NCBI GenBank assembly: GCA_964270895.1 | Contig: OZ185439.1 | Reading direction: 5' to 3' (one strand) | DNA: 64,000 bases | Origin: Podarcis filfolensis | Taxonomy: Eukaryota | Shown here: piece after piece, positions 761 through 52,600 of the stretch | Numbering within the stretch: the stretch's first letter is position 1 | Layout: each line of letters begins with the position of its first letter | Notes under the pieces: generated by a model | What the model saw: only the letters and a program-made list of their open reading frames with translations | What the model was told of the DNA's origin: nothing | Database searches by the model: none | Position numbers and translations under genes: made by a program

Positions 761-920
761 CTCCCTCAACAGATTATTCTTGCGGTGGTTTCCTCGCACA
801 TTCATCTGGGTCATTTCAAAGTCCGTTTTTTCCATCCAACTACCCAAACAATGCCGACTGTGTATGGGAAATCCAAGTAGGAAGCAATTCTCGTGTATCA
901 CTTACTTTCCAAACACTTCA
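761..920 (+). CDS. Gene 1 exon: CUB domain, first half
   Basis: ttcttag|CTCCC...CTTCA|gtaagt; [53 protein letters not shown]. Confidence 0.93.
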
Positions 921-13214: not shown

Positions 13215-13260
13215 ATGGATCAAACTGTGATCTTCCTTTTGGTGCTACTCTCAGCATCAG
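13215..13260 (+). CDS. Gene 2 exon 1: signal peptide
   Basis: caagATGG strong Kozak context; MDQTVIFLLVLLSAS then G|gtaatg; phase 1 matches the CUB1 exon. Confidence 0.75.
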
Positions 13261-21100: not shown

Positions 21101-22505
21101 GTGCATGCCCCTCAATGCAATCTAGGGCCCTATCTGTCACACTGGAGCAACCCAATCTGACCCAAGCTGATCTGGGTCCAACCCAGCCTGACCCAATATC
21201 TTGTGAATTGCCCTGTGATCTTTGGATGAAGGGCGGTATACAAATTTAAGAAATAATAATAAATAATAATAAGCTTGAAATTTTTTTTGGGGGGGGGCGG
21301 GAACAGTTCTAACTCAAGTTAAATATTTGGCCAGAAGAGGAGAAGGAGAAACTGCCTCCCCCCCCAACAGCATATTTCATTAGGGTACTAAATCAAACAC
21401 ATCAGATTCCCCCCCCCCAAAAAAAAATACCCATAGCAATGCATTCAGAAAAACCCTTGAATTCTTTGCATTCTGGTTTCTTGTTCTTATAAGAGTGCCT
21501 ACCATGAGCTGAACCTATCTATAGGCCTGTGCTGCAAAGAAAAGCTGGATTCACTGGGCTCGTAGCAGATCTAGTATTTATTCTTCTGCCAATGGCAGCT
21601 CTCTGCTTAATGGTGCAAAGATCACCTGGCTTCATGACACACAACAGATGTGATGCTGAAGATGGCTGAAGAGAACAGAAGGACCACATGGAATTCAGTC
21701 CTTGTGATTCTGTCCTCTGGGTCTTGGTGAAGCTGGAAAGTTGTTACTGGGATCTGCTTTTGGAGGGGTGGGGGGAAGCAATGCTTTGACACAATACTCA
21801 GCATTTATTTTTGTATTTGTTAGGTAGCTACAGTTGTGGCAAGACTTTCACAGATCCAACGGGGTCATTTTATCCCACATATTACACTGGTGGTGGAAAC
21901 GTCGTAGAGTGTCTCTGGACAATTGTTTCATATTATAAGATTCCTATAGTGCTAACCCTTGATTATATCAGGTAAGTCCTCCGTTGCTGAAAGCTAGTGT
22001 TTTGTACTGTCAGCATCTCGCTTGTACTTTGGCAATAGGTACCACTGAAGAGGAAATTATTTCGTCATGCTTCCTTTCCTCCTTAATCTTTTTCTTCACT
22101 TTCTGCTTCTCTTTTTCCACACTTACCCCTTTTCATGTTCTCCTGGTTCTTTCATCTTTTCTTTTTCTTTATATGTTTGCTTGTTTTGAATAACTAGAGC
22201 AAAAGGATGCAGAGTTGATATAATACATAAACTGATTGATTTGACATTTTTAAAAAAATACCTTGTGTAAATCATGTATAAGGGCTTTTCACCTGAGCAG
22301 CTTGTTGATGGATCGGGTTCATCTGCAAGGTGTGAGGGAGCTGACACCACCACCCTGTTGTGGGTTACAGGTGTGCCAGTTTAATTTGTTTTTCAAAAAT
22401 TTTCATCATTACTGAAATCACAAAGGAATAAAAGCATGCATATCCTTAAAGCATATATGTGAAAGATTGTATCATCCCTTATATACTCTATCACTGTGCT
22501 CTGCC

Positions 22506-22545
<40 letters not shown>

Positions 22546-25500
22546 ACATTTTCCAGTTTCAGAGTCCATTCCAGTTGTTCTGTTATTTGCAAAGTTAGTA
22601 AAAAATGGCTGGCAATTCCATAAGTGCCGGGGAATCTGGGTCAACTATGGCCTGCATATCTCACTTGGGCTGTCGAAGCTTCTGAGTCTTCATTCACAAA
22701 TTTAATAAAACCAAAGCAAGCTGAATGCAATGTGCCAGATGTTGATTGCCTTGGGAAAGGGTGAGAAATGGAAGTCTTTAAGGTGACCATGTCCTGTGGG
22801 CTCATGCATATTATATTCTAAATAAATAAATGAAGTTTCCAAAATTCCCTACAAAACAGTGCTCATGACTTCTGTGGGAAAATCAATACTATGGCCACAC
22901 TAGGAAGTATAGCTGTCCAGAGCCAGCACTCCTGCTAGAGTTCTGCTGCATATATTTAAAGTAGGAGAGGAATGATGCGCTGGCTCCAGGTCTGGCTCCC
23001 ACTGAGACATTGTGAGATGCATTCCAAAATCTTTCCACCAGAGCCTATTTCTTACCAACCAATGAGACATTACATTAATCAAAATGCTACAATATTTAGT
23101 GCTACAAGGCCTTTATATGTCCTACTTATATGTCCTACTTATCTGGGAGCAGGTCTCAGGGAACTCAAGAGTACCGGTACTTGCTTCCAATTAGCCATGC
23201 ATAGGATTTTGCTGTTGATGTGTTACGACAAAAAATTAACTGAACTCAAGGGGTCACAAACCGCAGGTGGGAGAGGAGACAGAGTTTTTAAAGTTAAGAA
23301 TGTGAGGAGAAAATGAAATCATCAAAATCATATAAATAATAAAATCATTGTCATCGTCAGCTGATACTTTTGAATGCAGGAATTTCTTTGCCTTGTACAG
23401 TATGACTAATGACACTTTTTCCTCCACAGTTTGGACTGTACTCGTGAATACATTCAAATCTATGATGGAATGGTAGATCATTCAGCACTACTTGGGCAAA
23501 TATGCGATGGCCCAAGTCAGGTATTCGTTTCACGTTCAGGCCTCATGAAAGTTTTACTCCACAGAGAGTCCTATCGTGCAGGCTCTGGCTTTTTTGCCTA
23601 TTATGATATAACAGGTAACCCTGGAACTCATACATTTACTTTCCATGCAGCCGAATATTTTTGCTTTTTGTATGCAGGAATAGAATTTTGTAGATCGGAT
23701 TAGAATTTGACATTGTGGGAATTTGCTTCAGGATTACAATAGAGGGGCTTTAACGCAGTAAACAATAGGGTTGTGCAACAGTTCACTAGATTGGCTTGTA
23801 TCTGTACTTGTAATATTGGGAAACAATCTACTCTGCTTCAGAGCCACTCTGTCTTTCCAGTTTGACTTCTTGTTCCGAGTCTGAATTAGACCTGCTTCTC
23901 CCCATTGATTATGATGGGGAATTTAAACATGGCTGAACGTTTTCCCCTTTTCCCCAGGAATGGATGACAGAGAAAACAATGCCTCTCCAGAGAGCATTAA
24001 GCCTGCCAAATTGCAGGCAGTGGAAGGCCTGGTTTTATCCCTACTACAAAACATATGCAGGTTGGATGGGGAGCTGATCTGCGGTCTTACCCTCCACACA
24101 TATGTTCAGTGTCACTGTTTTGATTATCTGAAGAAGGCCTGACTCATCCACAAACTATTTCTGCTCAACCTTTTCAGTGAAATTTTGCCTTTTTTAGTCT
24201 TCCCAGCTCCAGAACTATGCTACTCGTAAAAGCTGCCCAAACCCCTATTTGTTTCCATGGTTTTTCATTTTGTTTCCTCCAGTCTTCCTTCAAATGTTCA
24301 TTTTTTCTTCATAGGGAAAGCAAAAGTGCTAAATTCGCAAATAATTTTTTATTAAAAAAATCAACATTTTCACTGTATATTTTGGAAAGTTGTTTGTTTC
24401 ACTATCCATTTGGATACTTCTTACAATATTATAATGGTTGTCAAGGGACAAGTTGGGATACAATTGGATGCCATTTGGAATCAAGATGGTTGCCACACCA
24501 TGCAAATGTATACTTATTTCAACCACTCATTTTACAATTGCTCCGATACAAGTTTAAAATATAAATGTGGTTTTGATTTTAAAAGAGCAAATATTTTTAA
24601 ATCTAGGTTGAATCTTGACATCTGCGGGACATTATAGCATTAACAATTGCTAGAATGTTGATTGTTTTATAAAATGATGTTTTTTATTTATAGATCTGGC
24701 AACCTCACCAGTCCCTGAATTAACAACAGGTAATGAAATCTGCTCACCTTTTTTTTTAATGTAGGGAATATGAAGGTCCCTGGGCATAACAGTAGGCTTG
24801 GCAGAGTAATGGTCATAGGTAGTAGTCAACTAAATTTTACTGAGAGTATATCCATTTAAATTGAGAGTCCTAACTTAGTCATGTTCATTAATTTCAGTGG
24901 GTCTACTCTGACCAAAATGTAATTAAATGATACCTCATAAATGCTCTAGCATTTGATAATGTTGAGGTAATGAGGTTTTAGCATGGAAGAGAAAATAAAG
25001 ACAGAAACCAAATAAGGAACTATTGGAAATTTAACATTAAGTTATTGAGAATCCTGAAATCCAAACAAGGATAGATAATCTGTTGTAGAAAATATCAGTA
25101 AGAGCAAGGGAGAGAGAATTAATTTGAGCTGGAATCAAGAAGAGAAAGAGAATTCAAAAGGTACGTATTTTTTTTTTCAGACTTAGCTTTGCAAAGCTCT
25201 ATATTGATTTGTTTTGTAATGCTTTGTTCAGCTATTTCCCTAAGTTGTGGAACTAACTGAGTACAGAACTGAGATATACCATTCAACACAGACTAAACTG
25301 TGTTAAATCAACACAGACTTTATTTGGTATTAGGTAAAAAGTCATTGAATATACATTATCTGAACATCACTTACCTGTCCAAATTGGGGTGGTAAATGGG
25401 AGCATAGATAAAAACAGCATACTTTTTTGGCATGCATTTTAAAAACTAAAGGGGGTGAACCTTAATGGAAATGAGTAAGTGAATGAAAGAATGAAAGTTT

Positions 25501-28500
25501 GTTGGAAACAGATGTATTTATTCTTGCTTTGTTGTTGTTGTAAATATTCTTTCATCATGAGGTGAAATCTAATGTTGAATCAGTGCTTTTTTCTAAAAAA
25601 AATGTTTAGGGGTACTCTCATTTTCCTACTCATATTGAAATATCGCCCCTCAATGAGGCCAAACTTAAATTCACAAAATGTTTAGGGGTATGGGTACCCC
25701 TGCGTCCCCCCCCAGAAAAAAAGCACTGTGTTTAATCATGTTCAGGGTAGGTTCATTTATTTCAGTGGAACTACTCTGAATATGACTAATGTTGGATATC
25801 ACCTTCTGATGAGAAGATGAGAGTAAACAGGAACAAAATTAGGACAAAACTTGAAAAATTGTGATATCCTGGTTTATTTTAGTATGTGTAGAGCCAAAAC
25901 ACTGGATCCCAAAGGCCACACATCCCCTGTTTCATATAAGGATATTTACAATTTTCTTCAGAACAGCAGCTAACCTTGGTCAAGAGTCCTATGTTTCTCT
26001 TCAGTGTTCTAAGGTTATTAGAGTCTAAACACACATACGTCTCTGTTGCTTGTCCATTTATGACAACATGCTGGGGTGGTAAAATGCTTGTTATTCAACT
26101 GAGCTTTACTCCACAAATATTGATCAAGGTTGCTTTTTTATCAAATTCTTCTCTCACAGCTCCAGAGTTGACAACCGAACCCGTGTATAGTAAGTTTCCA
26201 ATCTAAATCTTAATTGTTATACTTTGTCCAAAAAGGGTATGAATTAGAGAGAAGCAAGTCTTCAACTGAATAATCAGACATTCAGTTGCAAATCTGTTGC
26301 CTTCTCTCTGTGTTCATGCAGTTAAGAATAATGAATACCCAGTGAAGAGGGCCCTCTTGAAATAGAAAACATCTCTGATCACAACTTGTTATGGTGTAAA
26401 AACACTGCAATCTCTGTTAACTGAAGGGCTTTACAGGCATTTGGACTTATGTCCACCGCCTTTCTCTTCTTCAAGGGAAAACAGAGGCAGCAGGGGTGAT
26501 TTGAGAATAGCCCTCCCCTCAGGCAGTAGCAGGAGCAATGCAGAACAGGGCACCTCAGTCCCAATCTCTCTAGGCCAGCGATGGGACGCCTTTGGTTCTT
26601 CACGTAAAAGTCCTTGACTTATAAATAAATAAATTACTTTTCTGTTCTTCTGTATCTCTTCACTACATTTGCATGCAAAATTCAAGTATAAGATATAATT
26701 TTAACTCTTTTGTGTAACAAGTAGTTCATTTTTTAAAATGAACATAGTAGAATGTGGATATTTAAATTTGCTGACCAATGTTCATCTTTCTTTAGCAACA
26801 ACTCTTCCTCCAGAAACCACTAGTGAGTACCTACCTTTTTGCATGTAATTTTGCCACAGTGAACAGCCAAGGGAATAATGTGATATCGGGCAGAAGATAC
26901 AGCATGGAATTAAAATGCAGTGCCTTCTTACATCCCTTTTATAATAATGGCATCTCAGGACCATCTGAGTAAAATCATGGTTGATGCTCTTTGTTGCTGA
27001 AAGAACGCGAAGCAGGAAGACCAACAGCAGATGGAGCCAGAGCACAGTCATCTAGGCAGCTTCCTAGTTGTCCCCATTCTCCTCCTTGCTCAGCTGTACA
27101 AAGCTAACACTGAGACTAAGAAGGAGGAATCTGACCAGCAGTACCACCTCCTGGACTTGCACATAGGATGGTGGGCAGGCAGGCAGGGGGTGCAGCTGAC
27201 AGCAGAATGAGGTTGGTGGGGCAGTGCCCCATTTGCTTTCACAAATCAGCCTGACCCAAAGGTAGATTAATATTTGTTTTGACACAAAGTAGAAACAGAA
27301 TAGGCTTTAAGCCTTTGAAAAATTGCATTTGCCAACACACACACAACTGAAAGCATGGTCATCTTGCCCTGGGGTGTAAAGTTAACATTTTTGTTCCTTG
27401 CTTTCTGATCATCGCCTTCTGAGAAATCCTATATTTCCAGCCCCCTGAATTGGGTGTTCCCAATGTGCCTAGGTGAAATTTTAGTCCTAGATGCCCGGGG
27501 TCTGAGGGAAGATCTAAAATGCAGTGCTAATGTTGCTGTAGAGGAGATTATCTCTACAATACCTTGCGCATAATGACAACGGAGCCTGGCTCTACAAAAT
27601 GTTCTGTCTGTGTTCTTCAGCGCCCTTTCAGTGTGGTGGCATCCTCTTGGAACCATTTGGATATATCCATGGCCCTTTTTAAAAAATGAACATAGTACAA
27701 TGTGGATATTTAAATTTGCTGACCAATGTTCATCTTTCTTTAGCAACAACTCTTCCTCCAGAAACCACTAGTGAGTACCTACCTTTTTCCATGTACCGGT
27801 AATTTTGCCAAAGTGAACAGCAAAAGGAATAATGTAGTTTCGGGCAGAAGATACAGCATGGAATTAAAACGCAGTCCCTTCTTACATCCTTTATAATAAT
27901 GGCATCTCAGGACCATCTGAGCCAGTGTGGTGTAGTGGTTAAGAGCGGTGGACTCGTAATCTGGAGAACCGGGTTCGCATCTCCGCTCCTCCACATGCAG
28001 CTGCTGGGTGACCTTGGGCTAGTCACACTTCTTTGAAGTCTCTCAGCCCCACTCACCTCACAGAGTGTTTGTTGTGAGGAAGGAAGGGAAAGGAGAATGT
28101 TAGCTGCTTTGAGACTCCTTCGGGTAGTGATAAAGCGGGATATCAAATCCAAATCCATCTGAGTACAATCGTGGGTTTGGTGGTCCACTAAAATATATCC
28201 AGTGTTAGTTACACTGAGTAGGAAACCTTCAGGCCCTTACTACAATGATTGCCTCTTGTGCCCCAGATCCTTTCCCCAAAGATTCTTGGAAATTTTAGCT
28301 TGTTTAGGGTGCTGAGAACTGTTAGGAGGCCCCCATTCCCCTCTCAGAGCTACAGTTGTCAGAGTTCCATGGAGAGAAGGTTTGGTTGTTGAATGTTTGG
28401 CTTAATATCAACACATTCTACCACAATCTGATTGATTCTGTTCTTTCTTACTAGTTCTATCCACAACTGGAGAACCGACCACTATAGTCACGCAGTGTAA

Positions 28501-29065
28501 GTCTGCATGTAGAAACTTCTTTTGTGACCACACCGGGAAATAACACACACAGATTGGGTGAACTGGGCCACATTTAATTTAACACTGCAAATCTGCAGAA
28601 GGGAACCAAGGTCAACCTCAGACATCTCCCTCTGTTCTCACAAAGGGAGATCTGATTATTTCTGTGGCCCACAGGACGTTTCCCCCAAGGGGCACAGGGT
28701 TGCTGGCTTCATTGGGTAAAAATACTGATGAATATTAACAGATAATAATGACATGCCTATTTCTTACCAATGCATATCAATGTTTCTCTTTGTGAACAGC
28801 TCCTTCTACACTTCCTGGTGAGTCCTACTTTTTCTATTCCAAGTCTGAATCTTTCTCAATAGGCATGAAGTATGAAAGATACATAGTGTGAAATCAATTA
28901 AGAATTGGGGGGGGGGGGAGCTCTTAGGTGTAGTTGCTAGTACATATTTGAAAGTCTGAAAGTATTAGTGATATATGTTCCAAAGGTAACTGAGTCATTA
29001 TTTCAAAACAAGGAAGAAATTGAACTGACTTTTGAAAAACAGTTTGGAAAATTGAATGGAAATTG

Positions 29066-29113
<48 letters not shown>

Positions 29114-32100
29114 AACTGGAAGCAATAGGTATTTTGTACTGAGCTGTATTAGGCAAGGCATAGCAACCTGGCTTTCGGTTACAACTTTGTTCCCCATTTC
29201 TTTTCTTCTAGGAACAAACTACCATCAGCTTTTTAGAAATCTTCCATTTCTATCCTGATGCAGTAGTGCTGAGGCTAGATGCTTCTTGGGTTTGGTGGTC
29301 CACTAAAATATATCCAGTGTTAGTTATACTGAGTAGTATACCTTCAGGCCCTTACTACAAGGATGGCCACTTGTGCCACAGATACTTTCCCCAAAGATTC
29401 TTGGGAATTTTAGCTTGTTAAGGGTGTGGAGAGTTGTTAGGAGGCATCACAACACAGGGTCGGTGCTCTCCTATTGTGCTTGTGGTCCCGTCGTCTTCGA
29501 GCTCTTCAGAAAACCCCCCCGAAAAAACGGCCAGACCACTTCTGCGCTGCTGGTTAGCCATCCCTCAAGGGTACCCCCTTGAGATTTTTGGGGGGCGCAG
29601 TGCCTTTGCGACTCCCACAAGCCCCTGTGTTGTTCGAAAATCCCCGACGAGACTTTCCACGCTCCCTTTCTGTCTGCGATGGAAACTGGAAGTCCAATCT
29701 AAATCTAAATCTTTATTGTTATACTTTGTCCAAAAAGGGTATGAATTAGAGAGAAGCAAGTCTTCAACTGAATAATCAGACATTCAGTTGCAAATCTGTT
29801 GCCTTCTCTCTGTGTTCATGCAGTTAAGAATAATGAATACCCAGTGAAGAGGGCCCTCTTGAAATAGAAAACATCTCTGATCACAACTTGTTATGGTGTA
29901 AAAACACTGCAATCTCTGTTAACTGAAGGGCTTTACAGGCATTTGGACTTATGTCCACCGCCTTTCTCTTCTTCAAGGGAAGACAGAGGCAGCAGGGGTG
30001 ATTTGCGAATAGCCCTTCCCTCAGGCTGTAGCAGGAGCAATGCAAAACAGGGCACCTCAGTCCCAATCTCTCTAGGCCAGCGATGGGACGCCTTTGGTTC
30101 TTCACTTAAAAGTCCTTGACTTATAAATAAATAAATTACTTTTCTGTTCTTCTGTATCTCTTCACTACATTTGCATGCAGAATTCAAGTATAAGATATAA
30201 TTTTAACTCTTTTGTGTAACAAGTAGTTCATTTTTTAAAATGAACATAGTAGAATGTGGATATTTAAATTTGCTGACCAATGTTCATCTTTCTTTAGCAA
30301 CAACTCTTCCTCCAGAAACCACTAGTGAGTACCTACCTTTTTGCATGTAATTTTGCCACAGTGAACAGCCAAGGGAATAATGTGGTATCGGGCAGAAGAT
30401 ACAGCATGGAATTAAAATGCAGTGCCTTCTTACATCCCTTATAACAATGGCATCTCAGGACCATCTGAGTACAATCGTGGTTGATGCTCTTTGGTGCTGA
30501 AAGAATGCGAAGCAGGAAGACCAACAGCAGATGGAGCCAGAGCACAGTCATCTAGGCAGCTTCCTAGTTGTCCCCATTCTCCTCCTTGCTCAGCTGTACA
30601 AAGCCAACACTGAGAAGGAGGAGGAAACTGACCAGCAGTGCCACCTCCTGGACTTGCACATAGGATGGTGGGCAGGCAGGCAGGGGGTGCGGCTGACAGC
30701 AGAATGAGGTTGGTGGGGCAGTGCCCCATTTGCTTTCACAAATCAGCCTGACCCAAAGGTAGATTAATATTTGTTTTGACACAAAGTAGAAACAGAATAG
30801 GCTTTAAGCCTTTGAAAAATTGCATATGCAAACACACACACAACTGAAAGCATGGTCATCTTGCACTGGGATGTAAAGTTAACATTTTTGTTCCTTGCTT
30901 TCTTTGTTCTCTGAACAAATGATCATCGCCTTCTGAGAAATCCTATATTTCCAGCCCCCTGAATTGGGTGTTCCCAATGTGCCTAGGTGAAATTTTAGTC
31001 CTAGATGCCCGGGGTCTGAGGGAAGATCTAAAATGCAGTGCTAATGTTGCTATAGAGGAGATTATCTCTACAATACCTTGCGCATAATGACAACGGAGCC
31101 TGGCTCTACAAAATGTTCTGTCTGTGTTCTTCAGCGCCCTTTCAGTGTGGTGGCATCCTCTCGGAACCATATGGATATATCTATGGCCCTGATTATCCTG
31201 GAAATGGCAGGCTGGTGCAGTGTGCCTGGGAAATTAAAGCTCCAATGTTTTACAATAGAGTTGTTTTACAGTTTAAAACAGTTGGTCGGAAGTAAGTATT
31301 TGCATTATCGTAGTCCTTTCTGTACATTTGACTGATTAATTTCTAAATCTGTTTTTGCAACCAGTAAAATGCTCCTAAACAACATGGAGTTTTGTGCCAT
31401 CTTAAAGACCGACACATTTAAAGACAAACAGCATTTAATATTCTTTAGTCTTTAACGGCCTTTGGGCAAGACCTTTTACACAGAACCTTCATTGTTTTTT
31501 GCTGCAGCAGCCTTACATGGCTTCCCCTGTGGATATGGTTAAAAATGTTTGAGTCCAAGATAATTTTTGATGTCTAGAACAATCAAGTGAGGTAGCCAGA
31601 ATCACCCAGGACCAGATACGGTCGTACCTTGGAAGTCGAACGGAATCCATTCCAGAAGTCCGTTTGACTTCCAAAACGTTCGAAAACCAAAGCGTGGCTT
31701 CTGATTTGAATTCATGGAAGCCCTATCGGACATTTGGCTTCCAAAAATAGTTCACAAACTGGAATAGTCACTTCTGGGTTTGATACTACCAGGAGACAAA
31801 ACATTCGGTAACTAAACTGTTCCACTTCTAAGGTATGATTGTACATAAGAAGGCAACGGGCAAGATACAATTCAGAGTTTTTCAATCCAGTCCCATATAC
31901 GTATATACGTGATATAGTTCACACAAATGCCTACAATGAGCCCCAGTGAATAAGGGAATATTGAATGGAGAATAGAGGGGGAGAATGGAATGCCTCTCTC
32001 ACACACATCCAGGGCTTTTAATTACTGTGAAGAATATGTATTACTTAGTATTTTTGTTTTTATAATACTTATTCTGTGACATATAATATACATTGCATTA

Positions 32101-33294
32101 CATGTACTCAACAACTTGAATCTAATTAGATAGTATTCATCACAGCTTGGTAACTTAAAGCTTTCTCCCAATGCCTGTCTACATCCATATAACTTAGAAA
32201 ACATTGCTAAAATCTGACTGTAAATGTGAGGCTGACCCCATATTTTTTCAAATACTCAGATTTATGGAGAATGATTGAGTGTATTTCCAATATTTGGTAA
32301 TCAATTTTTTGCCAGTCTCTCAGCATAATCCAACATGCCATGTCTTGAGGAATTGCTAGTTGCGAGGAATAAAAATAGAGTTTTTACGTGGCTCCATTAA
32401 TATGAATAATAAATTTCTAAATTTGCATCTACAGTATGAACTGCCGCACAGACTATATTGCCGTCTATGATGGTGGCCTGGGCTCATCAAGACAACTTGG
32501 AAGAATTTGCTTGGCTACCCGTCATGTATTTATATCCACTTCAGACACAATGACTGTTGTGTTGTACAGAAATTCCTTTAATGCAGGACCATCATTTACT
32601 GCTTATTACTATACTACGCCACAAGGTAAAATGTGATTTTTAAAGTCACCTATTAATCAACAAATATATTCAATCTGCTGCTTTCATGAAGGGATCCTTA
32701 TGCTTCTTTAAAAATTGCATAAGAATATATAAAAAGAGTCCTGGCTAATAAGACTGAATATCCTCGTAGCCCATCATTTTGGGAAGTCCAGAAACAGGAC
32801 TTCAAACCTGTTGCATTTACTGGGTCTGTTCACACGACGGTTTATTGTGGACCTGTGCTCACACATGCATGTTTTGCACAGCATCTACATGGCACAGTCC
32901 TCGTCAAAATGCAGTCCCATATTATTTTCCTAATTAATCCGGATTGGGTGGGTGTGGAACTGGTAAATGGTAAATGTGATAACGCTAAATGTGTACTAAA
33001 TGGTAAAAAAATATGAAACGGCATGTTGATAAGGACATCAGGGCTGGTTTGGGAGGTGACTGGGATGGCACTGGATTCTTATGGTTGGGAAGGAGCTGAA
33101 TGTTCCCTAGTGTGGGTAAATGTTGCTTGAGTAAAGAAGCTTCTGCACCCTGGTCTGCCAGTTTTTCGGCCTTTTGATTTCATTTGGCCAAGTACTGGGG
33201 ACACTTCTGTGGCAGTGAAGTAGAGGGATTCATCACTTGATCTCTCTCTCCAACCCCTCTTTCCACCCTTGGAGAGGGAGATCCAATGCCATCA

Positions 33295-33341
<47 letters not shown>

Positions 33342-35769
33342 TATTATATTTCTTTATTATTATTTATACCTCGCCCATCTGGCTGGGTTTCCCCAGCCAC
33401 CCTGGGCAGTTTCCAAAAAAAGATTAAAAATACATTAAACTTCCCTAAACAGGGCTGCCTTCAGATGTCTTCTAAACATCAGATAGTTGTTTATTTCCTT
33501 GACATCCGATGGGAGGGCGTTCCACAGGGTGAGCGCCACTACCAAGAAGACTCTCTGCCTGGTTCCCTGTAACTTGGCTTCTCGCAGTGAGGGAACCGCC
33601 AGAAGGCCCTCGGTGCTGGACCTCAGTGTCCGGGTAGAACGATGGGGGTGGAGACGCTCCTTCAAATATACTGGACCGAGGCCGTTTAGGGCTTTAAAGG
33701 TCAACACCAACACTTTGAGTTGTGCTCAGAAACGTACTGAGAGCCAATGTAGGTCTTTCAAGACCGGTGTTATGTGGTCTCAGCGGCCGCTCCCAGCCAC
33801 CAGTCTAGCCTTACTCCCTTACTACCAGAGGGTCTTACTGCCCCAGGGGACTATAGGCTTGAAGGACAAGAGTACATATTGGATTTATATTCCCTTCTTT
33901 TATTTGTCTTCTCATTCCCCAACAATTCACCTTTCATTCATTCATAAGTAAATACTATATGTTAGATCATCTAATGGTCAAACAAAATTCACTGCCACAA
34001 AAATGGGGTTTCAATGTAATATAGTTCTTAATAATTTTTATTCCTTTCTTTTGCAAGAAACAACCACAGAACACATCTTGCAAGAAACAACTACAGAACA
34101 CATTTTGCAAGAAACAACCACAGAACACATTGATCCTAGTAAGAAGAATCTGCTAGCTATTTAAAAGCATTAGTACAATATACAGTTTTGATTTCATTTT
34201 ACTGCACCATTTTCCTCTTACTCTGTTACTTTGTTTCTCTTCACGAACTAGCTTCTGTCACCCCGGAAGCAACTACAGAAGCAACTACTGCTGCTGGTAA
34301 GAGTCCTCTGACTCCCATACTAAAGTACTAAATCCTAATCCTGAGTATGTACACACAAATATCATAGAAGAGGTTTCTCATGCAGAGCATCTGCTAACGA
34401 GACACCTGAAAATTAGGTGGTGTGTATATTTTAAAGAGCCTGATCTGTTGATGGCAATCACAGACTGTCTGGAGAAGCAAGCACAAATCTCTTCCAGAGA
34501 TTTCCTTGACTTCTATTTCATTTGTATCCCATTGTCTATGACTCTGTTCCTCAAGTCTGGTCTTGAAACAAGCATAGTCACATCCACCTTGCTGAAACAT
34601 CCTCCTTGAATATTTGCTGAAATATTCTCCTTGAATATGGGGCTAAGGTGTCATGCGAATAATTTATGTTAATGTGGTAGATGTTGGAGTCGCCTATGCA
34701 GAGGTTATTCAGTTCCTCTTAGTACCTGACTTCTAATCATTAGATTGTGGTGACTGTTGTTGCTATGACACACTCAAAGCTTAGGAACTGAAGTCTCTGC
34801 ATAAGACTCAGCTGGCATGTACGGTAAGTGTAATTAGTGGAGCAACTTTTCCAACCAGAAACCACAGAACCTCTACCAATGACAAGACTGAATCTTTCTC
34901 TCAATAGGCAGGAAGTATGAAAGATACCTAGTAGAAATTCCATTCAGAATAGGGGGAAAGAGCTCTTAGGTGTGGTTGCTAGTACATATTTGAAAGTCTG
35001 AAAGTATTAGTGAGACATGTTCCAAAGGTAACTGAGTCAATATTTCAAAACAAGGAAGAAACTGAACCAACTTTTGAAAAAGAGTTTGGAAAATTGAATG
35101 GAAATTGTGTGTGTGTGTGTAACTGGAAGCAATAGGTATCTTGTACTGAGCTGTATTTGAAAGCATGCCCAGTGCAAGGAGATAAATAGGTACCACTCCG
35201 GCGGCAAGGTAAACGGCGTTTCCGAGCGCTGCTCTGGTTCACCAGAAGCGGCTTAATCATGCTGGCCACATGACCCGGAAGCTGTCTGCAGACAAACACC
35301 AGCTCCCTTAGCCTACAGAGTGAGATGAGGGAGCAAACCAGGAGTCGTCCACGACTGGACCTAATGGTCAGGGGTACCTTTGCCTTTTACTGAGCTGTAT
35401 TAGGCATGGCATAGCAACCTGGATGTGGGTTACAGCTTTATTCCCCATTTCCTTTCTTCGAGGGACAAACTACCATCACCTTTTTAGAAATCTTCCATTT
35501 CTATCCTGATGCAGTAGTGCTGAGGCTAGATGCTTCTTGGGTTTGGTGGTCCACTGAAAAATATCCAGTGTTAGTTACACTGAGTAGTAAACCTTCAGGC
35601 CCTTACTACAAGGATTGCGTATTGTGCCACAGATCCTTTCCCCAAAGATTCTTGAAAAGGTAACTGAGTCATTATTTCAAAACAAGGAAGAAATTGAACC
35701 AACTTTTGAAAAAGAGTTTGGAAAATTGAATAGAAATTTTATTTGTCTGTGTTTGTGTTTGTGTTTGTT

Positions 35770-35811
<42 letters not shown>

Positions 35812-41800: not shown

Positions 41801-44800
41801 GAACATAGTAGAATGTGGATATTTAAATTTGCTGACCAATGTTCATCTTTCTTTAGCAACAACTCTTCCTCCAGAAACCACTAGTGAGTACCTACCTTTT
41901 TGCATGTAATTTTGCCACAGTGAACAGCCAAGGGAATAATGTGGTATTGGGCAGAAGATACAGCATGGAATTAAATTGCAGTGCCTTCTTACATCCCTTA
42001 TAATAATGGCATCTCAGGACCATCTGAGTACAATTGTGGTTGATGCTCTTTGGTGCTGAAAGAACGCGAAGCAGGAAGACCAACAGCAGATGGAGCCAGA
42101 GCACAGTCATCTAGGCAGCTTCCTAGTTGTCCCCATTCTCCTCCTTGCTCAGCTGTACAAAGCCAACACTGAGAAGGAGGAGGAAACTGACTAGCAGTGC
42201 CACCTCCTGGACTTGCACATAGGATGGTGGGCAGGCAGGCAGGGGGTGCAGCTGACAGCAGAATGAGGTTGGTGGGGCAGTGCCCCATTTGCTTTCACAA
42301 ATCAGCCTGACCCAAAGGTAGATTAATATTTGTTTTGACACAAAGTAGAAACAGAATAGGCTTTAAGCCTTTGAAAAATTGCATATGCAAACACACAAAC
42401 AACTGAAAGCATGGTCACCTTGCACTGGGATGTAAAGTTAACATTTTTGTTCCTTGCTTTCTGATCATCGCCTTCTGAGAAATCCTATATTTCCAGCCCC
42501 CTGAATTGGGTGTTCCCAATGTGCCTAGGTGAAATTTTAGTCCTAGATGCCTGGGGTCTGAGGGAAGAGCTAAAATGCAGTGCTAATGTTGCTGTAGAGG
42601 AGATTATCTCTACCATACCGTGCGTATAATTACAATTGAGCCTGGCTCTACAAAATGTTCTGTCTGTGTTCTTCAGCGCCCTTTCAGTGTGGTGGCATCC
42701 TCTCGGAACCTTTGGATATATCCATGGCCCTTTTTTAAAATGAACATAGTACAATGTGGATATTTAAATTTGCTGACCAATGTTCATCTTTCTTTAGCAA
42801 CAACTCTTCCTCCAGAAACCACTAGTGAGTACCTATCTTTTTCCATGTACCGGTAATTTTGCCACAGTGAACAGCAAAAGGAATAATGTAGTTTCGGGCA
42901 GAAGATACAGCATGGAATTAAAACGCAGTGCCTTCTTACATCCTTTATAATAATGGCATCTCAGGACCATCTGAGCAAGTGTGGTGTAGTGGTTAAGAGC
43001 GGTGGACTCGTAATATGGTGAACCGGGTTCGCGTCTCCACTCTTCCACATGCAGCTGCTGGGTGACCTTGGGCTAGTCACACTTCTTTGAAGTCTCTTAG
43101 CCCCACTCACCTCACAGAGTGTTTGTTGTGATGAAGGAAGGGAAAGGAGAATGTTAGCTGCTTTGAGACTCCTTTGGGGAGTGATAAAGCGGGATATCAA
43201 ATCCAAATCCAGAAGCGGCTTAATCATGCTGGCCACATGACCCGGAAGCTGTCTGCAGACAAACACCAGCTCCCTTAGGCTACAGAGTGAGATGAGCACG
43301 CAAACCAGGAGTCGTCCACGACTGGACCTAATGGTCAGGGGTACCTTTGCCTTTTGCTGAGCTGTATTAGGCATGGCATAGCAACCTGGATTTGGGTTAC
43401 AGCTTTATTCCCCATTTCCTTTCTTCGAGGGACAAACTACCATCAGCTTTTTAGAAATCTTCCATTTCTATCCTGATGCAGTAGTGCTGAGGCTAGATGC
43501 TTCTTGGGTTTGGTGGTCCACTAAAATATATCCAGTGTTAGTTATACTGAGTAGTATACCTTCAGGCCCTTACTACAAGGATGGCCACTTGTTCCACAGA
43601 TACTTTCCCCAATGATTCTTGGGAATTTTGGCTTGTTAAGGGTGTGGAGAATTGTTAGGAGACCCTCATCGCCCTCTCAAAGATACAGTTGTCAGAGTTC
43701 CATGGAGAGAAGGTCTGGTTGTTCAATGTTTGGCTTAATATCAACACATTCTACCACAATCTGATCGATTCTGTTCTTTTTTACTAGTTCTATCCACAAC
43801 TGGAGAACCGACCACTATAGTCACACAGTGTAAGTCTGAATGTAGAAACTTCTTTTGTGACCACACAGGGAAATAAGACACACAGATTGGGTGAACTGAG
43901 CCACATTTCATTTAACACTGCAAATCTGCAGAAGGGAACCAAGGTCAACCTCAGACATCTCCCTCTGCTCTCATGGAGGGAGATCTCATTATTTCTGTGG
44001 CCCACAGGACGTTTCCCCCAAGGGGCACAGGGTTGCTGGGTTCATTGGGTAAAAATACTGATGAATATTAATAGATAATAATGACATGCCTATTTCTTAC
44101 CAATGCATATCAATGTTTCTCTTTCTTTGTGAACAGCTCCTTCTACACCTCCTGGTGAGTCCTACTTTTTTTATTCCAAGTCTGAATCTTTCTCAATAGG
44201 CATGAAGTATGAAAGATACATAGTGTGGAATCAATTAAGAATTTGGGGGGGGGAGCTCTTAGGTGTGGTTGCTAGTACATATTTGAAAGTCTGAAAGTAT
44301 TAGTGATATATGTTCCAAAGGTAACTGAGTCATTATTTCAAAACTAGGAAGAAATTGAACCGACTTTTGAAAAACAGTTTGGAAAATTGAATGGAAATTG
44401 TGTGTTTGTGTGTGTGTGTGTAAGAAACTGGAAGCAATAGGTATTTTGTACTGAGCTGTATTAGGCATGGCATAGCAACCTGGCTTTTGGTTACAACTTT
44501 GTTCCCTATTTATTTTCTTCTAGGAACAAACTACCATCAGCTTTTTAGAAATCTTCCATTTCTATCCTGATGCAGTAGTGCTGAGGCTAGATGCTTCTTG
44601 GGTTTGGTGGTCCACTAAAATATATCCAGTGTTAGTTATACTGAGTAGTATACCTTCAGGCCCTTACTACAAGGATTGCCACTTGTTCCACAGATACTTT
44701 CCCCAAAGATTCTTGGGAATTTTAGCTTGTTAAGGGTGTGGAGAATTGTTAGGAGGCCCTCATCGCCCTCTCAAAGCTACAGTTGTCAGAGTTCCATGGA

Positions 44801-46586
44801 GAGAAGGTCTGGTTGTTCAATGTTTAGCTTAATATTAACACATTCTACCACAATCTGATTGATTCTGTTCTTTCTTACTAGTTCTATCCACAACTGGAGA
44901 ACCGACCACTATAGTCACACAGTGTAAGTCTGCATGTAGAAACCTCTTTTGTGACCACACAGGGAAATAAGACACACAGATTGGGTGAACTGAGCCACAT
45001 TTAATTTAACACTGCAAATCTGCAGAAGGGAACCAAGGTCAACCTCAGACATCTCCCTCTGCTCTCACGTAGGGAGATCTGATTATTTCTGTGGCCCACA
45101 GGACGTTTCCCCCAAGGGGCACAGGGTTGCTGGCTTCATTGGGTAAAAATACTGATGAATATTAACAGATAATAATGACATGCCTATTTCTTACCAATGC
45201 ATATCAATGTTTCTCTTTCTTTGTGAACAGCTCCTTCTACACCTCCTGGTGAGTCCTACTTTTTTTATTCCAAGTCTGAATCTTTCTCAATAGGCATGAA
45301 GTATGAAAGATACATAGTGTGGAATCAATTAAGAATTGGGGGGGGTGGAGCTCTTAGGTGTAGTTGCTAGTACATATTTGAAAGTTTGAAAGCATTCGTG
45401 ATATATGTTCCAAAGGTAACTGAGTCATTATTTCAAAACAAGGAAGAAATTGAACCAACTTTTGAAAAACAGTTTGGAAAATTGAATGGAAGTTGTGTGT
45501 GTGTAAGTAACTGGAAGCAATAGATATCTTGTCGTGAGCTGTATTAGGCACGGCATAGCAACCTAGCTTTTGGTTACAACTTTGTTTCCCATTTCTTTTC
45601 TTCTAGGAACAAACTACCATCAGCTTTTTAGAAATCTTCCATTTCTATCCTGATGCAGTAGTGCTGAGGCTAGATGCTTCTTGGGTTTGGTGGTCCACTA
45701 AAATATATCCAGTGTTAGTTATACTGAGTAGTATACCTTCAGGCCCTTACTACAAGGATGGCCACTTGTTCCACAGATACTTTCCCCAATGATTCTTGGG
45801 AATTTTGGCTTGTTAAGGGTGTGGAGAATTGTTAGGAGACCCTCATCGCCCTCTCAAAGCTACAGTTGTCAGAGTTCCATGGAGAGAAGGTCTGGTTGTT
45901 CAATGTTTGGCTTAATATCAACACATTCTACCACAATCTGATCGATTCTGTTCTTTTTTACTAGTTCTATCCACAACTGGAGAACCGACCACTATAGTCA
46001 CACAGTGTAAGTCTGAATGTAGAAACTTCTTTTGTGGCCACACAGGGAAATAAGACACACAGATTGGGTGAACTGAGCCACATTTCATTTAACACTGCAA
46101 ATCTGCAGAAGGGAACCAAGGTCAACCTCAGACATCTCCCTCTGCTCTCATGGAGGGAGATCTCATTATTTCTGTGGCCCACAGGACGTTTCCCCCAAGG
46201 GGCACAGGGTTGCTGGGTTCATTGGGTAAAAATACTGATGAATATTAATAGATAATAATGACATGCCTATTTCTTACCAATGCATATCAATGTTTCTCTT
46301 TCTTTGTGAACAGCTCCTTCTACACCTCCTGGTGAGTCCTACTTTTTTTATTCCAAGTCTGAATCTTTCTCAATAGGCATGAAGTATGAAAGATACATAG
46401 TGTGGAATCAATTAAGAATTGGGGGGGGGGGAGCTCTTAGGTGTGGTTGCTAGTACATATTTGAAAGTCTGAAAGTATTAGTGATATATGTTCCAAAGGT
46501 AACTGAGTCATTATTTCAAAACAAGGAAGAAATTGAACCAACTTTTGAAAAAGAGTTTGGAAAATTGAATGGAAATTTTATTTGTC

Positions 46587-46632
<46 letters not shown>

Positions 46633-49600
46633 TGTGTAAGTAACTGGAAGCGATAGATATCTTGTAGTGAGCTGTATTAGGCATGGCATAGCAACCTGGC
46701 TTTTGGTTACAACTTTGTTCCCCATTTCTTTTCTTCTAGGAACAAACTACCATCAGCTTTTTAGAAATCTTCCATTTCTATCCTGATGCAGTAGTGCTGA
46801 GGCTAGATGCTTCTTGGGTTTGGTGGTCCACTAAAATATATCCAGTGTTAGTTATACTGAGTAGTATACCTTCAGGCCCTTACTACAAGGATGGCCACTT
46901 GTTCCACAGATACTTTCCCCAAAGATTCTTGGGAATTTTAGCTTGTTAAGGGTGTGGAGAATTGTTAGGAGGCCCTCATCGCCCTCTCAAAGCTACAGTT
47001 GTCAGAGTTCCATGGAGAGAAGGTCTGGTTGTTCAATGTTTAGCTTAATATTAACACATTCTACCACAATCTGATCGATTCTGTTCTTTCTTACTAGTTC
47101 AGTCCACAACTGGAGAACTGACCACTAAAGTCATAGAGCGTAAGTCGGCATGTAGAAACTTCTTTTGTGACCACACCGGGAAATAAGACACACACATTGA
47201 GTGAACTGGGCCACATTTAATTTAACACTACAAATCTACAGAAGGGAACCAAGGTCAACCTCAGACATCTCCCTCTGCTCTGACAGAGGGAGATCTGATT
47301 ATTTCTGTGGCCCACAAGGAAGTTCCCTCAAGGGGCACAGGGTTGCTGGGTTCATTGGGTAAAAATACTGATGAATATTAACAGATAATAGTGGCATGTC
47401 TATTACTTACCAATGCTTATCAATGTTCCTCTTTCTTTTTGAACAGCTCCTACTCCTATTGGTGAGTCCTACTTTTTCATTACAAGGCTGAATCTTTCTC
47501 AATAGGCATGAAGTATGAAAGATAAATAGTGGGAAATTGATTACGAATGGGGGGGTGGAGCTCTTAGGTGTTATTGCTAGTGCATATTTGAAAGTTTGAA
47601 AGCATTCGTGATATATGTTCCAATGGTAACTGAGTCATTATTTCAAAACAAAGAAGAAATTGAACAGACTTTTGAATAAAGATTTTGGAAAATTGAATGG
47701 AATGTAAGTAGAATGTAAGCATAAGTCTGCATGCTTGAAACATCTTTTGTAACCACATAGGGAAATAAGATTCACAGACTGGGCGGAATGAGCCACATTT
47801 AATTTAACACAACAGATCTGCTGAAGGGAACCAAAGTGCACAATACTATCTTCAAATAGCAAACAGGGTGAACCGACTCTGACAAGAATAAGAGGCATCA
47901 TTTCACCTTAAGCCCCATAACTTAGATGGGGTTTTACAGGTTGGCCTCAAAGGTACTTCTTATTCTGTCAGTGGGTCTCACAACTCAGAAGGCAAGGCAA
48001 AGAAAAGTACCTAAGGGTGCTCACCAAACCTTAACTACCCGATAACTAATTAATTAACCTATTTAACAACAAAGTGATTTACAACCAACGAAACAGACAA
48101 GCAACTCTCACCCATGAGATGAAGTAAAACCAAGAGGAAAGAGAAATGCATTAAAAACATCCTGCCCACAAATATATTAGTAATTTAATAGGGGCAAGGA
48201 TATTGGAGGCCTCCAGCTTCAACCTAAAAGGGCCAATTATTTGCTTATTAATAACAGAAGGAGAGAGTTAATGCAATCAAGTTGGGGGAGGGAGGGAGGA
48301 AGATTTTAAATTAAGATGGATTTCATTTCACATTTCTCTGTACAAAATTCTATTTTGGCTTACATGCACAAAATATTGTGTTTTCTAGTATGTGGTGGCT
48401 CTCTCTACTTTCCAAATGGATCTTTCTCTGGACCATATTATCCTGGAAACGGTGCCATTATACAGTGTAGCTGGGAAATTCAAGTGAGCCCTGATAGACA
48501 AATAGTTCTCCAGTTTTCTTATATTAGGTAAGTGTAAGGAACTGAATGTTTTCCCATTTTCCACAGGCACCTGCACATGATGTTAATTCATGGTTTTGTC
48601 ATTACCTGAAGACTTTAATAGGTTATGGGTGGCTGTTCTTCTCTGTGCTTGAAAAGATAGATGTGCTGAGGTGTTTGCCTGAATTTGTAAGCACCAAACT
48701 ATGTAGGGAGGTCAGAATGTTTAAGCAAGCCCTGCCCTTAACCTGGCTGTCTGCTTTGCTCCTTCCCTCTCAGCCTCCAACTTTCTCTGTGTCACACAGG
48801 GAGGGTCTGCATAGAATTTCTACTTGTATTCACTTGAACACAAGCAGAACTCTCTGCATGAGGGACCCTGATTCTATCCAACAAACTTAGCATGTGATAG
48901 CCATCAGATTAAATCCTGCTAACTGGTCATGCGGTTCTGCCCTACACGAGATGAAATCCCATACAAATTAAAAACCTTCCAAAGAAAATACATCATAAAC
49001 ACATTTTTATTACAAACTCTACAAGTGGTAGATATTGGCCCTTTTCTGAAAACAAAAGGGTCCACTTTTTAATGCTTTCTTAGGAAATATGAAAGACAGG
49101 CCCTTTCACTGAGGCATTGAAAGATGAGTAAAAAAGACAAGTATTTTGTGAATCTTGTCTTTAAAGCAAATTATGCTGTTCCAGCCAGAGGAGACATCAT
49201 TCAATAGCAAAGTGGTTAAATTGTATGCATATATATTTGAATTCTTTGAATAAATTTGTAAATTTGAATATTTGAATTCTGGGCATTTTCAGGAGCAAGG
49301 CTGAGAAAGACCTATAACTGTGACACTGGAAAGCCATTGCCAGGTGGAGCAGACTGTACTGGACGTAATGGGCCAGAGGTCTGACATGACCTTGATATGT
49401 ACATAGGCATGCCACTCTTTTAGGTTGAGCTAATCTGGGATACATCTGAGAGCCTCATCAGCCACCTAGCTTATCACTCAGCTGACATTTACTGAAACAT
49501 CTCCATAGTATCATAGATGTAGGGTGGGGTTCTCACAGGCAGAACCAATCATAACATTACTTTAATATGTTCGGAATTCAGGTCAGCTCCACTGAATCTA

Positions 49601-52600
49601 TGTATTTACCTTTATATTTTGGCATATGTGTCACCAAAGAGAGAATCAAAGGGTGCTTGAATGTTCACTTGAATGTTCAATGTGGTATCTTTGCTCCTCA
49701 TATGTACATGTGATTTGCAGTGTCCAAACATTGTCATTGTCATCAAAATGCCAGCCCATATCTGCCCCCTCCTGGATTTATTATTTCCAGGGAAACCCTG
49801 ATAAGTAAAGAACGACAACGCTATTGCCAGTGAATCATTTGTGATAGTGACCCATTATGAAATTGAACCCCCATATATAAGCAACCTATGTAACATTTCT
49901 TTACTTAATGTGAAAATCTAATGTATGAAATGATGGCATAATTTTATACACAAAGAGTGACTTGCTGACCTACCTTTATACAGTCTGGACTGCAATAAAG
50001 AATATATTGTGATCTTCGATGGGTACCCGTATGCCTCCACTATTCTTGGAAGAACTTGCTCTGGCATCTATCTCAACTATACCTACATATCAACTTCCAA
50101 CACAATGACTATTCTGCTGCACAGAGATTCATATTACTCAGGAGATGGGTTTTATGCTTCTTACTATTCTATTCCACTAAGTAAGAGTTATCTATTTATC
50201 TAGTTCTAGGACATTTCTACTATCTGTTGTGTTAGATTAATGTTGTTCTGGTTTGAGGATGCAATGTAAGCTGAAAATCAACATATGTCTTGGGCAGAGA
50301 TGGGGAACTTGTGGTTCTCCAGATGGTCTCCAACTCCCATCAATCCCTGCCAGCATAGGCAAAGATCAGGGATGATGTGAGTTGTGATCTAGCAACATTG
50401 GGTGGGCCACAGGCTCCCCACCCTTTGTCTAGGATCATACCAATATACAAACCCATAGGCTGGTCGGATTATGGCACAGTTTCTGTGACCTATCCAGAGA
50501 TGAATAGGATATTTACTTTGCTTAACTTTTCCTGTTTGCATGAATGGTATCAGTTTGCAGTTGGATAGATCAAAGGTATTTTTCCTATGAGGGACCAAAG
50601 TAAGATCTGAATGCACAATTTTCTGCCATGTTAAAATTTCTAGCCCCTTGACATGCACACTTTGAAGAATAAGGCAATGCTTCACTTTAGCAACAACTGA
50701 AGCACCATCTCGCCACTGACACCTTTTTTTGTTAATGTTGTAGGAGAATATTTTATTCCACCAGGCTTTTTGTATGTTTTAAGCATCCTGATTTACTTGC
50801 ATTTCACTTTAAATGTTCTCCCTTTAATTGTATTGATATTTTTTTGCTGTATAAATAAGGTGTGTGCACGCGCGCGCACACACACACACACACACTGGTG
50901 ACTTTTGTCAACGAAGAATAGCTGCCATATGTTCCTAGGTTATTGGATATATTACTGCTAGGATCTTAACATCAGTGTAATAGTACTTTTATTGTACTAT
51001 TTGTTTACCTAAATAGGAACAGAAACAACTACTGAACCACCTCTCAATGAATCAACAGCTGGTAAGACCTTGTTCTTTTTCTTTAATGTCATTCATTTTA
51101 AATGCTCTCCCTTTAATTGTATTCTTGTATGATTAATGTGTGTGTGTTTGTGTGTGTGTGCGTGCACACACACACTGATGACCAATCAATGAAAAATATC
51201 TGCAATATATTACTAGGTTACTGGATAGATGACTGCTGGGATCTCGATATCTTCAGTGGAATATCTGTACTATTTATTTTGGTTCCTTTAATAGACTTAA
51301 CATTTGAATCAAGTGCTAGTGAAGCAACAACTGATAAGATGTTTTTCCTTTTCTTCTGTGTCTTTTGTTAGGTAATAAGGCAAATGGTTAAACATGACAC
51401 TCAAAGAAACTAGATGCTTCTTTTCACAGTTGTATGATTTAGGCACCTCTGAGCTTGCAGAGGATTGCATGCTCAAGATCCAGGGAAGCTGTTCTTCACC
51501 AAAGATATATCTGAAACCACTTGCTATCTTCTCTCTGTTGTGGAAAAGAAGCAGTAGATTTTACTCCTCAGGGAATGGCATTAGATTACACAGTAGAGGC
51601 ACTCTGAAAAGAACATTTTTCATATACTTAAATCCCAACAAAACGGAGTACAAGCAACACTGATTGTTTGTATAATGGTCTTTGTCATGGTGGAAGGGTG
51701 TAGCAGGTGAGGGCACAGAACTCAATGTTGTGACTACAATTTCCCAACTTTTTACCATTTAAATGCTAATTAGACACAAATTGATCTCCCTTTTGTTTTG
51801 TTTTTCATTTGTACAGCTCTTCCTACAAGTTTAGCACCAGTTCCTGCAAGAAGTAAGTTCCAATTTCTCCCTAAAACATGCATGTGAAAATTGCAGATTT
51901 TGCTGATTTGGGTTGCCTAGCTGAAAAGTCTGTGTGTTCAAAGGAAACATTGAAACTGAGTATTCCAAATACTTCAAATTTCTGAAAACGTGGTAAAGCC
52001 GTTCCATGGCAGCTTCTTTATGAGCTCAAACAAGCCCCCGCTTGCCTGACATATCATTCACCAAGGTTGCCCCTACTCATAAGTAAATGTAAAAAACATT
52101 ACAGTATTTAATATGGTTTCTATGTGCCCCATTCAGCGCTCTCGTGTTCCGGAGAATACATGCTTGCACGCATCAGCAGGGACTATCTTGGGTTGCTGGG
52201 CTACAATGCAAGCGAAGTATCCCTGAATACTTCAGACCCCTTCTGCACACCTCAGATTACTCAAGACTATGTGGTCTTCGAGGTACCATATAGTGGGTGT
52301 GGCACAGTAAGAAAGGTAAGACAATGCGTTCTTAAAAATATTGTCAGTATCCAATGCACTTGTTCTGTTTGTGCAAGGATTTTTGCATGTGCTATGGAAC
52401 TTCTCCGCTATCCTCTCCCTGCACATCTCACACCCTCCTCAAATCTATTTCAGGGTTGTTGGAAACCCCAGAAGAGATTTAAGGGGTTGTGGTCAGAGGA
52501 GGGGGGAAAGTTCTGCTGCACAAGCTTAAATCCTTGCAATGATGGAACTAGTTACTCAGTACCACATTGGGTACTGCACATTATCTGTTATCTGGTTCGT

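Follow-up and report, generated by a model that had tools for sequence, protein, structure and literature searches.

Can the spacers between the domains of a glycoprotein grow by the addition of whole small exons, and could their length then be set both in the genome and by splicing? The question is raised by a 64,000-nt stretch of DNA, without Ns, from the lizard Podarcis filfolensis (GenBank assembly GCA_964270895.1, contig OZ185439.1), which is called the window throughout and to which all coordinates refer. An earlier note on this DNA described a mucin stalk encoded by 27 symmetric micro-exon cassettes at 24694–51852. Our analysis suggests that these exons belong to an intact gene of the DMBT1/CUZD1 group whose spacers, rich in proline, threonine and serine (PTS) and carried on phase 1-1 micro-exons, grew by exon duplication; we put the probability of this reading as a whole at about 0.8.

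Gene model and micro-exon linkers

Six-frame open reading frames (ORFs) and Pfam matches reveal two tandem genes of the CUB/ZP/transmembrane (TM) type on the + strand of the window, to which all features described below also belong. The second gene (13215–56613) is complete. Mapping the nearest protein, from P. lilfordi (P0171), onto the window with tblastn and then checking each exon boundary gave a model of 39 exons that form one uninterrupted frame of 991 amino acids (aa), with AG/GT sites that are all canonical. The protein starts with a signal peptide and the product of a 30-nt micro-exon, continues through CUB-A, linker 1, CUB-B, linker 2, CUB-C and linker 3, and finishes with four ZP exons that carry an RRKR site and lead into a TM helix and a short tail. 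The linkers are inter-domain spacers lying distal to the ZP module rather than a membrane-proximal stalk.

The linker exons themselves are as the earlier note described them. An independent scan for segments bounded by AG and GT, 3n long, open in phase 1 and T/P/S/E-rich returned precisely the same 27 micro-exons, which measure 15–81 nt, are all multiples of 3 and have phase 1-1 boundaries. They make up linker 1 (7 exons, 24694–30324, 207 nt, 69 aa), linker 2 (18 exons, 34058–47461, 591 nt, 197 aa spread over 13.4 kb) and linker 3 (2 exons, 51017–51061 and 51817–51852, 81 nt, 27 aa), and the two-exon CUB units are likewise phase 1-1 (148 + 185 = 333, 157 + 191 = 348 and 139 + 197 = 336 nt). 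Every micro-exon is preceded by a pyrimidine-rich acceptor with AG and followed by a consensus donor (GTAAGT, GTGAGT, GTAAGA or GTAATG). Candidate donors number 32 on the + strand versus 1 on the − strand between 24 and 52 kb, with 0–2 elsewhere in the window, and the micro-exon signal is concentrated in phase 1, the other two frames yielding 0 and 13 candidate donors.

These exons fall into nine distinct types, six of them single-copy (a, b, c, d, e and f) and three, designated T, L and P, present in seven copies each. Since 21 of the 27 are copies of T, L or P, the array amounts to 9 independent observations, not 27. The order is a b T T L P T in linker 1, c d L P T T L P T T L P L P L P L' P' in linker 2 and e f in linker 3. 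Because each unit is phase 1-1 and a multiple of 3, unequal crossing-over, deletion or skipping keeps the frame, and with the frame always kept, spacer length can vary through genomic copy number as well as through cassette skipping. The claim that nearly all skips stay open was borne out: a junction stop (TAA or TGA) arises in 7 of 465 ordered pairings, in each case from a T-ending L-type exon joined to 34058 (AA...) or 51017 (GA...).

Linker 1 opens with the single-copy exons a (24694–24729, 36 nt, LATSPVPELTT; orthologue in P. lilfordi P0171 and locus L001) and b (26160–26189, 30 nt, PELTTEPVY). The T type (27 nt, TTLPPETT) has three copies in linker 1 (26796–26822, 27744–27770 and 30298–30324) and copies 4 to 7 in linker 2 (38102–38128, 39043–39069, 41857–41883 and 42798–42824). 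The first copy of the L type (42 nt, LSTTGEPTTIVTQ) lies at 28455–28496, inside 2.3 kb of linker 1 sequence that P. lilfordi lacks, and is followed in linker 2 by copies at 36277–36318, 40033–40074, 43788–43829, 44882–44923 (within the run of 1.09–1.13-kb L-P units) and 45965–46006, and by an old diverged copy, L' (QSTTGELTTKVIE, 47098–47139). Exons of the P type (type peptide PSTPP; 18 or 15 nt) occupy 28800–28817 (18 nt, PSTLP), 36626–36643, 40382–40399, 44137–44154, 45231–45248, 46314–46331 and, as the 15-nt P' (PTPI), 47447–47461. Linker 2 begins with exons c (34058–34138, 81 nt, with three internal 27-nt repeats, ETTTEHILQ ×3) and d (34252–34296, 45 nt, SVTPEATTEATTAA). The 27-nt unit of exon c (34049–34138) contains the acceptor motif TTGCAAG, which creates in-frame cryptic acceptors at +27 and +54. 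Linker 3 consists of exon e (51017–51061, 45 nt), whose Zootoca orthologue is triplicated and variably included among isoforms, and exon f (51817–51852, 36 nt), whose orthologue is skipped in Zootoca X2, as is an exon at the matching linker 3 position in Pogona X2.

In composition the linkers stand apart from the remainder of the protein: P, T and S together account for 59–61% of linkers 1 and 2 and 50% of linker 3, versus 22% elsewhere. S and T make up 43% of linkers 1 and 2, and linker 2 is also 17% P over its full length. Mucin character, previously ascribed to the entire array, can be upheld for linker 2, which is mucin-like in its 197 aa of repeated T, L and P cassettes, but linkers 1 and 3 are too short to qualify alone. 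By analogy with the SIDs and STP regions of DMBT1, the linkers are presumably O-glycosylated and extended in shape.

The other exons complete the gene model. Exon 1 (13215–13260), located by tblastn with P. lilfordi P0171, supplies the start codon and signal peptide (MDQTVIFLLVLLSASG), and exon 2 (20919–20948, 30 nt, VKSATTVAKG) is a 28th symmetric phase 1-1 micro-exon, 5' of the range considered in the earlier note. At the position matching exon 2, the Pogona orthologue has a 24-nt micro-exon, an SRCR exon and then two more micro-exons. CUB-A is encoded at 21824–21971 (148 nt) and 23430–23614 (185 nt; Pfam CUB, E=2e-06), CUB-B at 31135–31291 (157 nt; Pfam CUB) and 32435–32625 (191 nt; Pfam CUB, E=2.8e-06), and CUB-C at 48389–48527 (139 nt; Pfam CUB) and 49984–50180 (197 nt; Pfam CUB, E=2e-07), so that Pfam CUB matched five of the six half-exons. 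The ZP-N exon (52137–52315; Pfam ZP-N, E=2e-08) and ZP exon 2 (53504–53895; Pfam Zona_pellucida, E=1.1e-13) are followed by the ZP-C exon with the RRKR furin-type site (54661–54944) and by the last exon, which encodes the TM helix, short tail and stop codon (56465–56613). Sequence matches in the PDB were to cubilin, neuropilin and PCPE for the CUB domains and to uromodulin and GP2 for the ZP module. The upstream tandem paralogue shares this CUB-ZP-TM layout and is represented in the window by its 3' part (700–7666), its 5' part lying outside; it comprises CUB exons at 700–921 and 1841–2371, ZP exons between 2433 and 6368 and a TM exon at 7481–7666.

Copy number and tandem duplication

The locus was compared at the genomic level in Lacerta agilis, P. 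lilfordi and P. raffonei, while the exon structure of Zootoca was read from protein isoforms only. A check of exon counts in related species, which the earlier note had called for, gave 9 micro-exons in L. agilis (one per type: a b T, c' d L P and e f in the three linkers), 13 in P. lilfordi (a b T T, c d L P L' P P'' and e f) and 27 in the window. Zootoca has 14 in a different, independent duplication pattern (a b T a b T a, c' d L P and e e e). Linker 2 of P. raffonei reads c d L P T (fragment) T L' P''; its L' exon (locus 6988–7029), orthologous to window 47098–47139, encodes the same peptide and has the donor AT instead of GT, so that the cassette is dead there and the frame undisturbed. 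Linker 2 measures ~53 aa in Lacerta and Zootoca, 86–88 aa in two Podarcis species and 197 aa in the window, and exon c contains two repeat units (54 nt) in Lacerta and Zootoca and three in the Podarcis species. In collinear alignment with P. lilfordi, non-coding DNA is 95–97% identical, which is below the identity of the youngest paralogous copies within the window, and the window has an additional 2.3 kb in linker 1 and ~9 kb in linker 2. These comparisons support the conclusion that the genomic copy number of the micro-exons shifts quickly between species.

Self-alignment shows that the T, L and P copies lie, together with their introns, within nested tandem segmental duplications of 92–99% identity. 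L-P units of 1.09–1.13 kb span 43352–47702, and a composite unit of 3.76 kb contains L, P, T, a truncated CUB-B exon fragment and T. The 3,755-bp stretch at 36735–40489, which carries T, the CUB fragment, T, L and P (four micro-exons), is 100% identical to 40491–44245 at a period of 3,756 bp downstream on the + strand; the pair represents either a tandem duplication of very recent origin, in which case copy number is likely to be polymorphic, or a false duplicate created during assembly. Tracts of (TG)n lie at or adjoin several L-P unit edges (29066–29109, 35744–35816, 36889–36912, 40644–40667, 44398–44421 and 46581–46637) and are a possible substrate for unequal exchange.

That splice sites are intact in every copy, as previously stated, is correct insofar as all are canonical. 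Since the copies are 92–100% identical, introns included, this intactness reflects their youth, as recent duplication predicts, and is not evidence of selective constraint. Among the six young L and P copies, variable columns number 4 of 60 in the exons versus 81 of 1006 in flanking sequence (p = 1.0), and an apparent excess of exon changes among paralogous copies (p = 0.0016) is due wholly to the old L'/P' pair.

The truncated CUB-B fragments travel with the T exons. Three are present (27621–27676, 38922–38976 and 42677–42731), each corresponding to about the first 55 nt of CUB-B exon 1. In their acceptor context they match the true exon exactly over 20 nt, and if spliced in they produce an in-frame stop after 19 codons. 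The first has a counterpart in P. lilfordi that annotated transcripts skip. The block of T, fragment and T is native to linker 1 and is found also in linker 2 of the window and of P. raffonei. A tRNA-derived short interspersed nuclear element considered at the block boundary (28157/28169) was not supported, as ARAGORN gave no tRNA-like head; the 241-bp element at this boundary occurs only within the window's three duplicated blocks.

We propose that the ancestral lacertid set comprised about nine micro-exons, one per type (a b T, c d L P and e f), and that unequal recombination between intronic repeats amplified T, L and P to seven copies each in the P. filfolensis lineage. The amplified segments would have been the L-P units edged by (TG)n and the 3.76-kb composite with its truncated CUB exon, blocks may also have moved between linkers 1 and 2, and linker 2 would have expanded from ~53 aa to 197 aa. 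The predicted product is a 991-aa type-I glycoprotein with a signal peptide, three CUB domains, a ZP polymerisation module, an RRKR cleavage site and a TM helix. ZP proteins of the uromodulin/GP2 kind are cleaved at a furin-type site and then polymerise; in the lizard protein, the CUB domains would project from the ZP core on P/T/S-rich spacers.

Gene identity, exon use and competing explanations

The nearest proteins, found by phmmer with a ZP exon query and then by a follow-up search, are CAI5774931/2 of P. lilfordi, with identities of 97% in ZP exon 2 and 96% over the C-terminal 386 aa. Next come proteins of Zootoca, Lacerta, Pogona, Hemicordylus, snakes and turtles named DMBT1, 'DMBT1-like' or 'CUB and zona pellucida-like domains 1'. 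The window protein is thus closest to Podarcis proteins, yet identical to none among those found. The CUZD1 name of the P. lilfordi orthologue stems from UniRef and Blast2GO automatic annotation. Features of the DMBT1 family are present in the form of CUB domains followed by a C-terminal ZP module, closest relatives in sequence searches named DMBT1 or DMBT1-like, and short S/T-rich inter-domain spacers on separate symmetric exons. Neither tblastn with the Pogona SRCR domain nor the six-frame ORF lists revealed an SRCR exon or relic in the 64-kb window, and Pfam detected no SRCR in the P. lilfordi orthologue; the Pogona orthologue has one SRCR exon, which is skipped as a cassette. On its sequence matches and domain layout, we would class the gene with the DMBT1/CUZD1 group, as a member without SRCR.

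In the P. lilfordi proteins each of the nine exon types is matched, in order, by an identical or near-identical peptide, and the annotation that yielded these proteins was built with Illumina RNA-seq, PacBio Iso-Seq, EVM and PASA (PMC10214862). The presence of orthologues of all nine types in this transcript-informed annotation supports the interpretation that the micro-exons are real coding exons. At the Pogona genomic locus the linkers likewise consist of phase 1-1 exons (18–42 nt), indicating that the micro-exon mosaic is common to lacertids and an agamid, two distant squamate groups.

Annotated isoforms of relatives differ by whole cassettes. The two P. lilfordi isoforms (833 vs 853 aa) differ by one L and one P exon (20 aa), Zootoca X1–X4 differ by 15, 30 and 12 aa (e, e+e and f), and a 31-aa block (a+b+T) is missing from a Zootoca accession with an older X2 label. 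Pogona isoforms differ by a 30-nt exon, a 36-nt exon (10 and 12 aa) and the SRCR exon. The earlier proposal that length is tuned by both skipping and copy number is thus supported in relatives, by isoforms and by counts; for P. filfolensis it is a prediction from the genome. Standard annotation fails over the micro-exon region. The NCBI models of the gene (proteins P0170, P0172 and P0173 among them) divide it in P. raffonei into 372 aa and 386 aa, with the break at the L exon; in P. muralis and L. agilis they cover only part of it, beginning at an intronic ATG immediately 5' of CUB-C.

Several points weigh against an intact gene with spacers grown by exon duplication. For relatives, the isoforms come from computational annotation pipelines rather than from cloned cDNAs, and inclusion of the duplicated T, L and P exons in P. 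filfolensis mRNA is itself predicted. A search with spliced linker 2 (query P0171:265-420) for short transcript-derived protein fragments returned no match, a blank made uninformative by the length window and the low-complexity query. The split and truncated NCBI models in three lacertids show that the region is evidently hard to model. The young copies, with exons no better conserved than introns, bear no signature of selection, the strong decoy CUB-B acceptors could divert splicing to a premature stop, and if the exact 3,755-bp repeat is an assembly duplication, the micro-exon count falls to 23.

The last of these points would extend to an assembly artefact, in which the exact repeat, and maybe further near-identical units, were falsely duplicated and the true exon number is 23 or fewer. 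Tandem repeats of such size are a known weak point of assemblies, and 36735–40489 and 40491–44245 match perfectly, while other units are 92–98% identical. We nevertheless consider this explanation quite unlikely: sequence flanking the perfect stretch shows ordinary divergence (33 differences within the first 1 kb), the window contains no Ns, other assemblies show intermediates (one T-fragment-T block in linker 2 of P. raffonei, extra L-P units in P. lilfordi), and the array would still number 23 exons without the perfect copy. Doubt of another kind attaches to exon use, which in P. filfolensis was read from genomic sequence alone. The extra exons could be genomic passengers, with only a fixed set of ~9–13 spliced in and the young duplicates ignored, or with decoy CUB acceptors yielding non-productive transcripts, so that the protein is no longer than in relatives. 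Exons no more conserved than introns, the P. raffonei L' copy that has already lost its donor, and the in-frame stops behind the decoy acceptors would all fit such a situation. It is an unlikely one in our estimation, however, because the splice signals and flanks of the duplicated exons are identical to those of copies that P. lilfordi transcripts include, both T copies are used in that species although the decoy fragment lies between them, and no feature separates 'used' from 'unused' copies.

A decaying pseudogene in a tandem DMBT1-like cluster, with the repeats as neutral debris, might be suspected from the paralogue tail at 700–7666 and from the lack of constraint on the duplicated exons. 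We reject this reading as highly improbable because the 991-aa ORF is intact over 39 exons with canonical splice sites throughout; moreover, the C-terminal 386 aa retain 96% identity to an expressed P. lilfordi orthologue, and the signal peptide, RRKR site and TM helix are preserved. The reading we prefer remains that of an intact DMBT1/CUZD1-group gene whose PTS spacers grew by duplication of micro-exons.

Known spacer systems and the meaning of the array

DMBT1 (gp-340, salivary agglutinin, muclin, hensin) belongs by homology to the same protein superfamily as the lizard gene and resembles it in its CUB and ZP modules and S/T-rich spacers, the likeness to SIDs resting on PMC3100851. Between its globular domains lie short spacers rich in S and T, which carry dense O-glycosylation and are believed to adopt an extended shape (PMC3100851); its exon copy number varies, and alternative splicing has been proposed (PMC3100851, PMC5435793, PMC9038570). 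The textbook example is human DMBT1, where germline copy-number variation of the SRCR+SID exon array alters protein length and function (PMC5435793, PMC9038570). The lizard gene differs in having three CUB domains and no SRCR in the window, in amplifying a PTS-only micro-exon or pair (18–42 nt) within 1.1–3.8-kb units rather than an SRCR+SID block, and in showing variation between species, not within a population. CUZD1 likewise has a signal peptide, CUB domains, ZP, TM and no SRCR, but the lizard protein has three CUB domains rather than two, has long PTS linkers, and its closest named relatives are mostly DMBT1-like.

Repetitive spacers have parallels in other proteins. In titin, an unrelated protein, the PEVK exons form a comparable array of small, symmetric, differentially spliced spacer exons. 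The frog integumentary mucins (FIM-B.1 and FIM-C.1), also unrelated, are likewise described as placing a repetitive low-complexity spacer on many small, symmetric, differentially spliced exons; the spliced cassettes of FIM-B.1 were put forward in the earlier note, and PMC7177656 mentions alternative splicing for FIM-C.1 only. During 'mucinisation', as in MUC7/Muc10, intra-exon PTS repeats are gained in particular lineages and change rapidly in copy number (PMC9417175, PMC4997351). The lizard gene is similar in that T/S/P-rich repeats gained in one lineage make a secreted protein longer, but its repeat unit is a whole exon with introns, which allows length to be set by splicing too; only exon c (34058–34138) grows by an intra-exon 27-nt repeat. 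The principle of modular spacer exons is already known from the SRCR/SID exons of DMBT1 (PMC3100851, PMC5435793), and no new principle is involved here. The locus joins two known themes, exon-array copy variation and PTS gain, in the form of PTS-only micro-exons amplified in segmental units.

A more ambitious interpretation, which we regard as possible but doubtful, would combine these elements into an ongoing 'mucinisation by exon duplication' in an SRCR-less DMBT1 paralogue. Here PTS micro-exons would have tripled, from 9 in the shared lacertid state to 27, and carried linker 2 past true mucin-domain length, and the recency of the exactly repeated 3,755-bp stretch would make copy number probably polymorphic in the population. 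Germline copy number and splicing would then act as a length dial for a CUB lectin array borne on ZP filaments, possibly under host-microbe selection as proposed for human DMBT1 copy-number variation.

The locus offers a clean, datable natural series for the growth of a presumably glycosylated spacer by whole-exon duplication, from 9 micro-exons in Lacerta through 13–14 in P. lilfordi and Zootoca to 27 in the window. The same series displays the transfer of blocks between linkers, the hitch-hiking of a truncated domain exon and, in a sister species, a cassette killed by a donor mutation. Because annotation pipelines split or truncate the gene in three lacertid genomes, proteins of this kind are systematically under-described. 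For the DMBT1 family, these data extend the picture of a variable SRCR/SID exon array to PTS-only micro-exons in reptiles.

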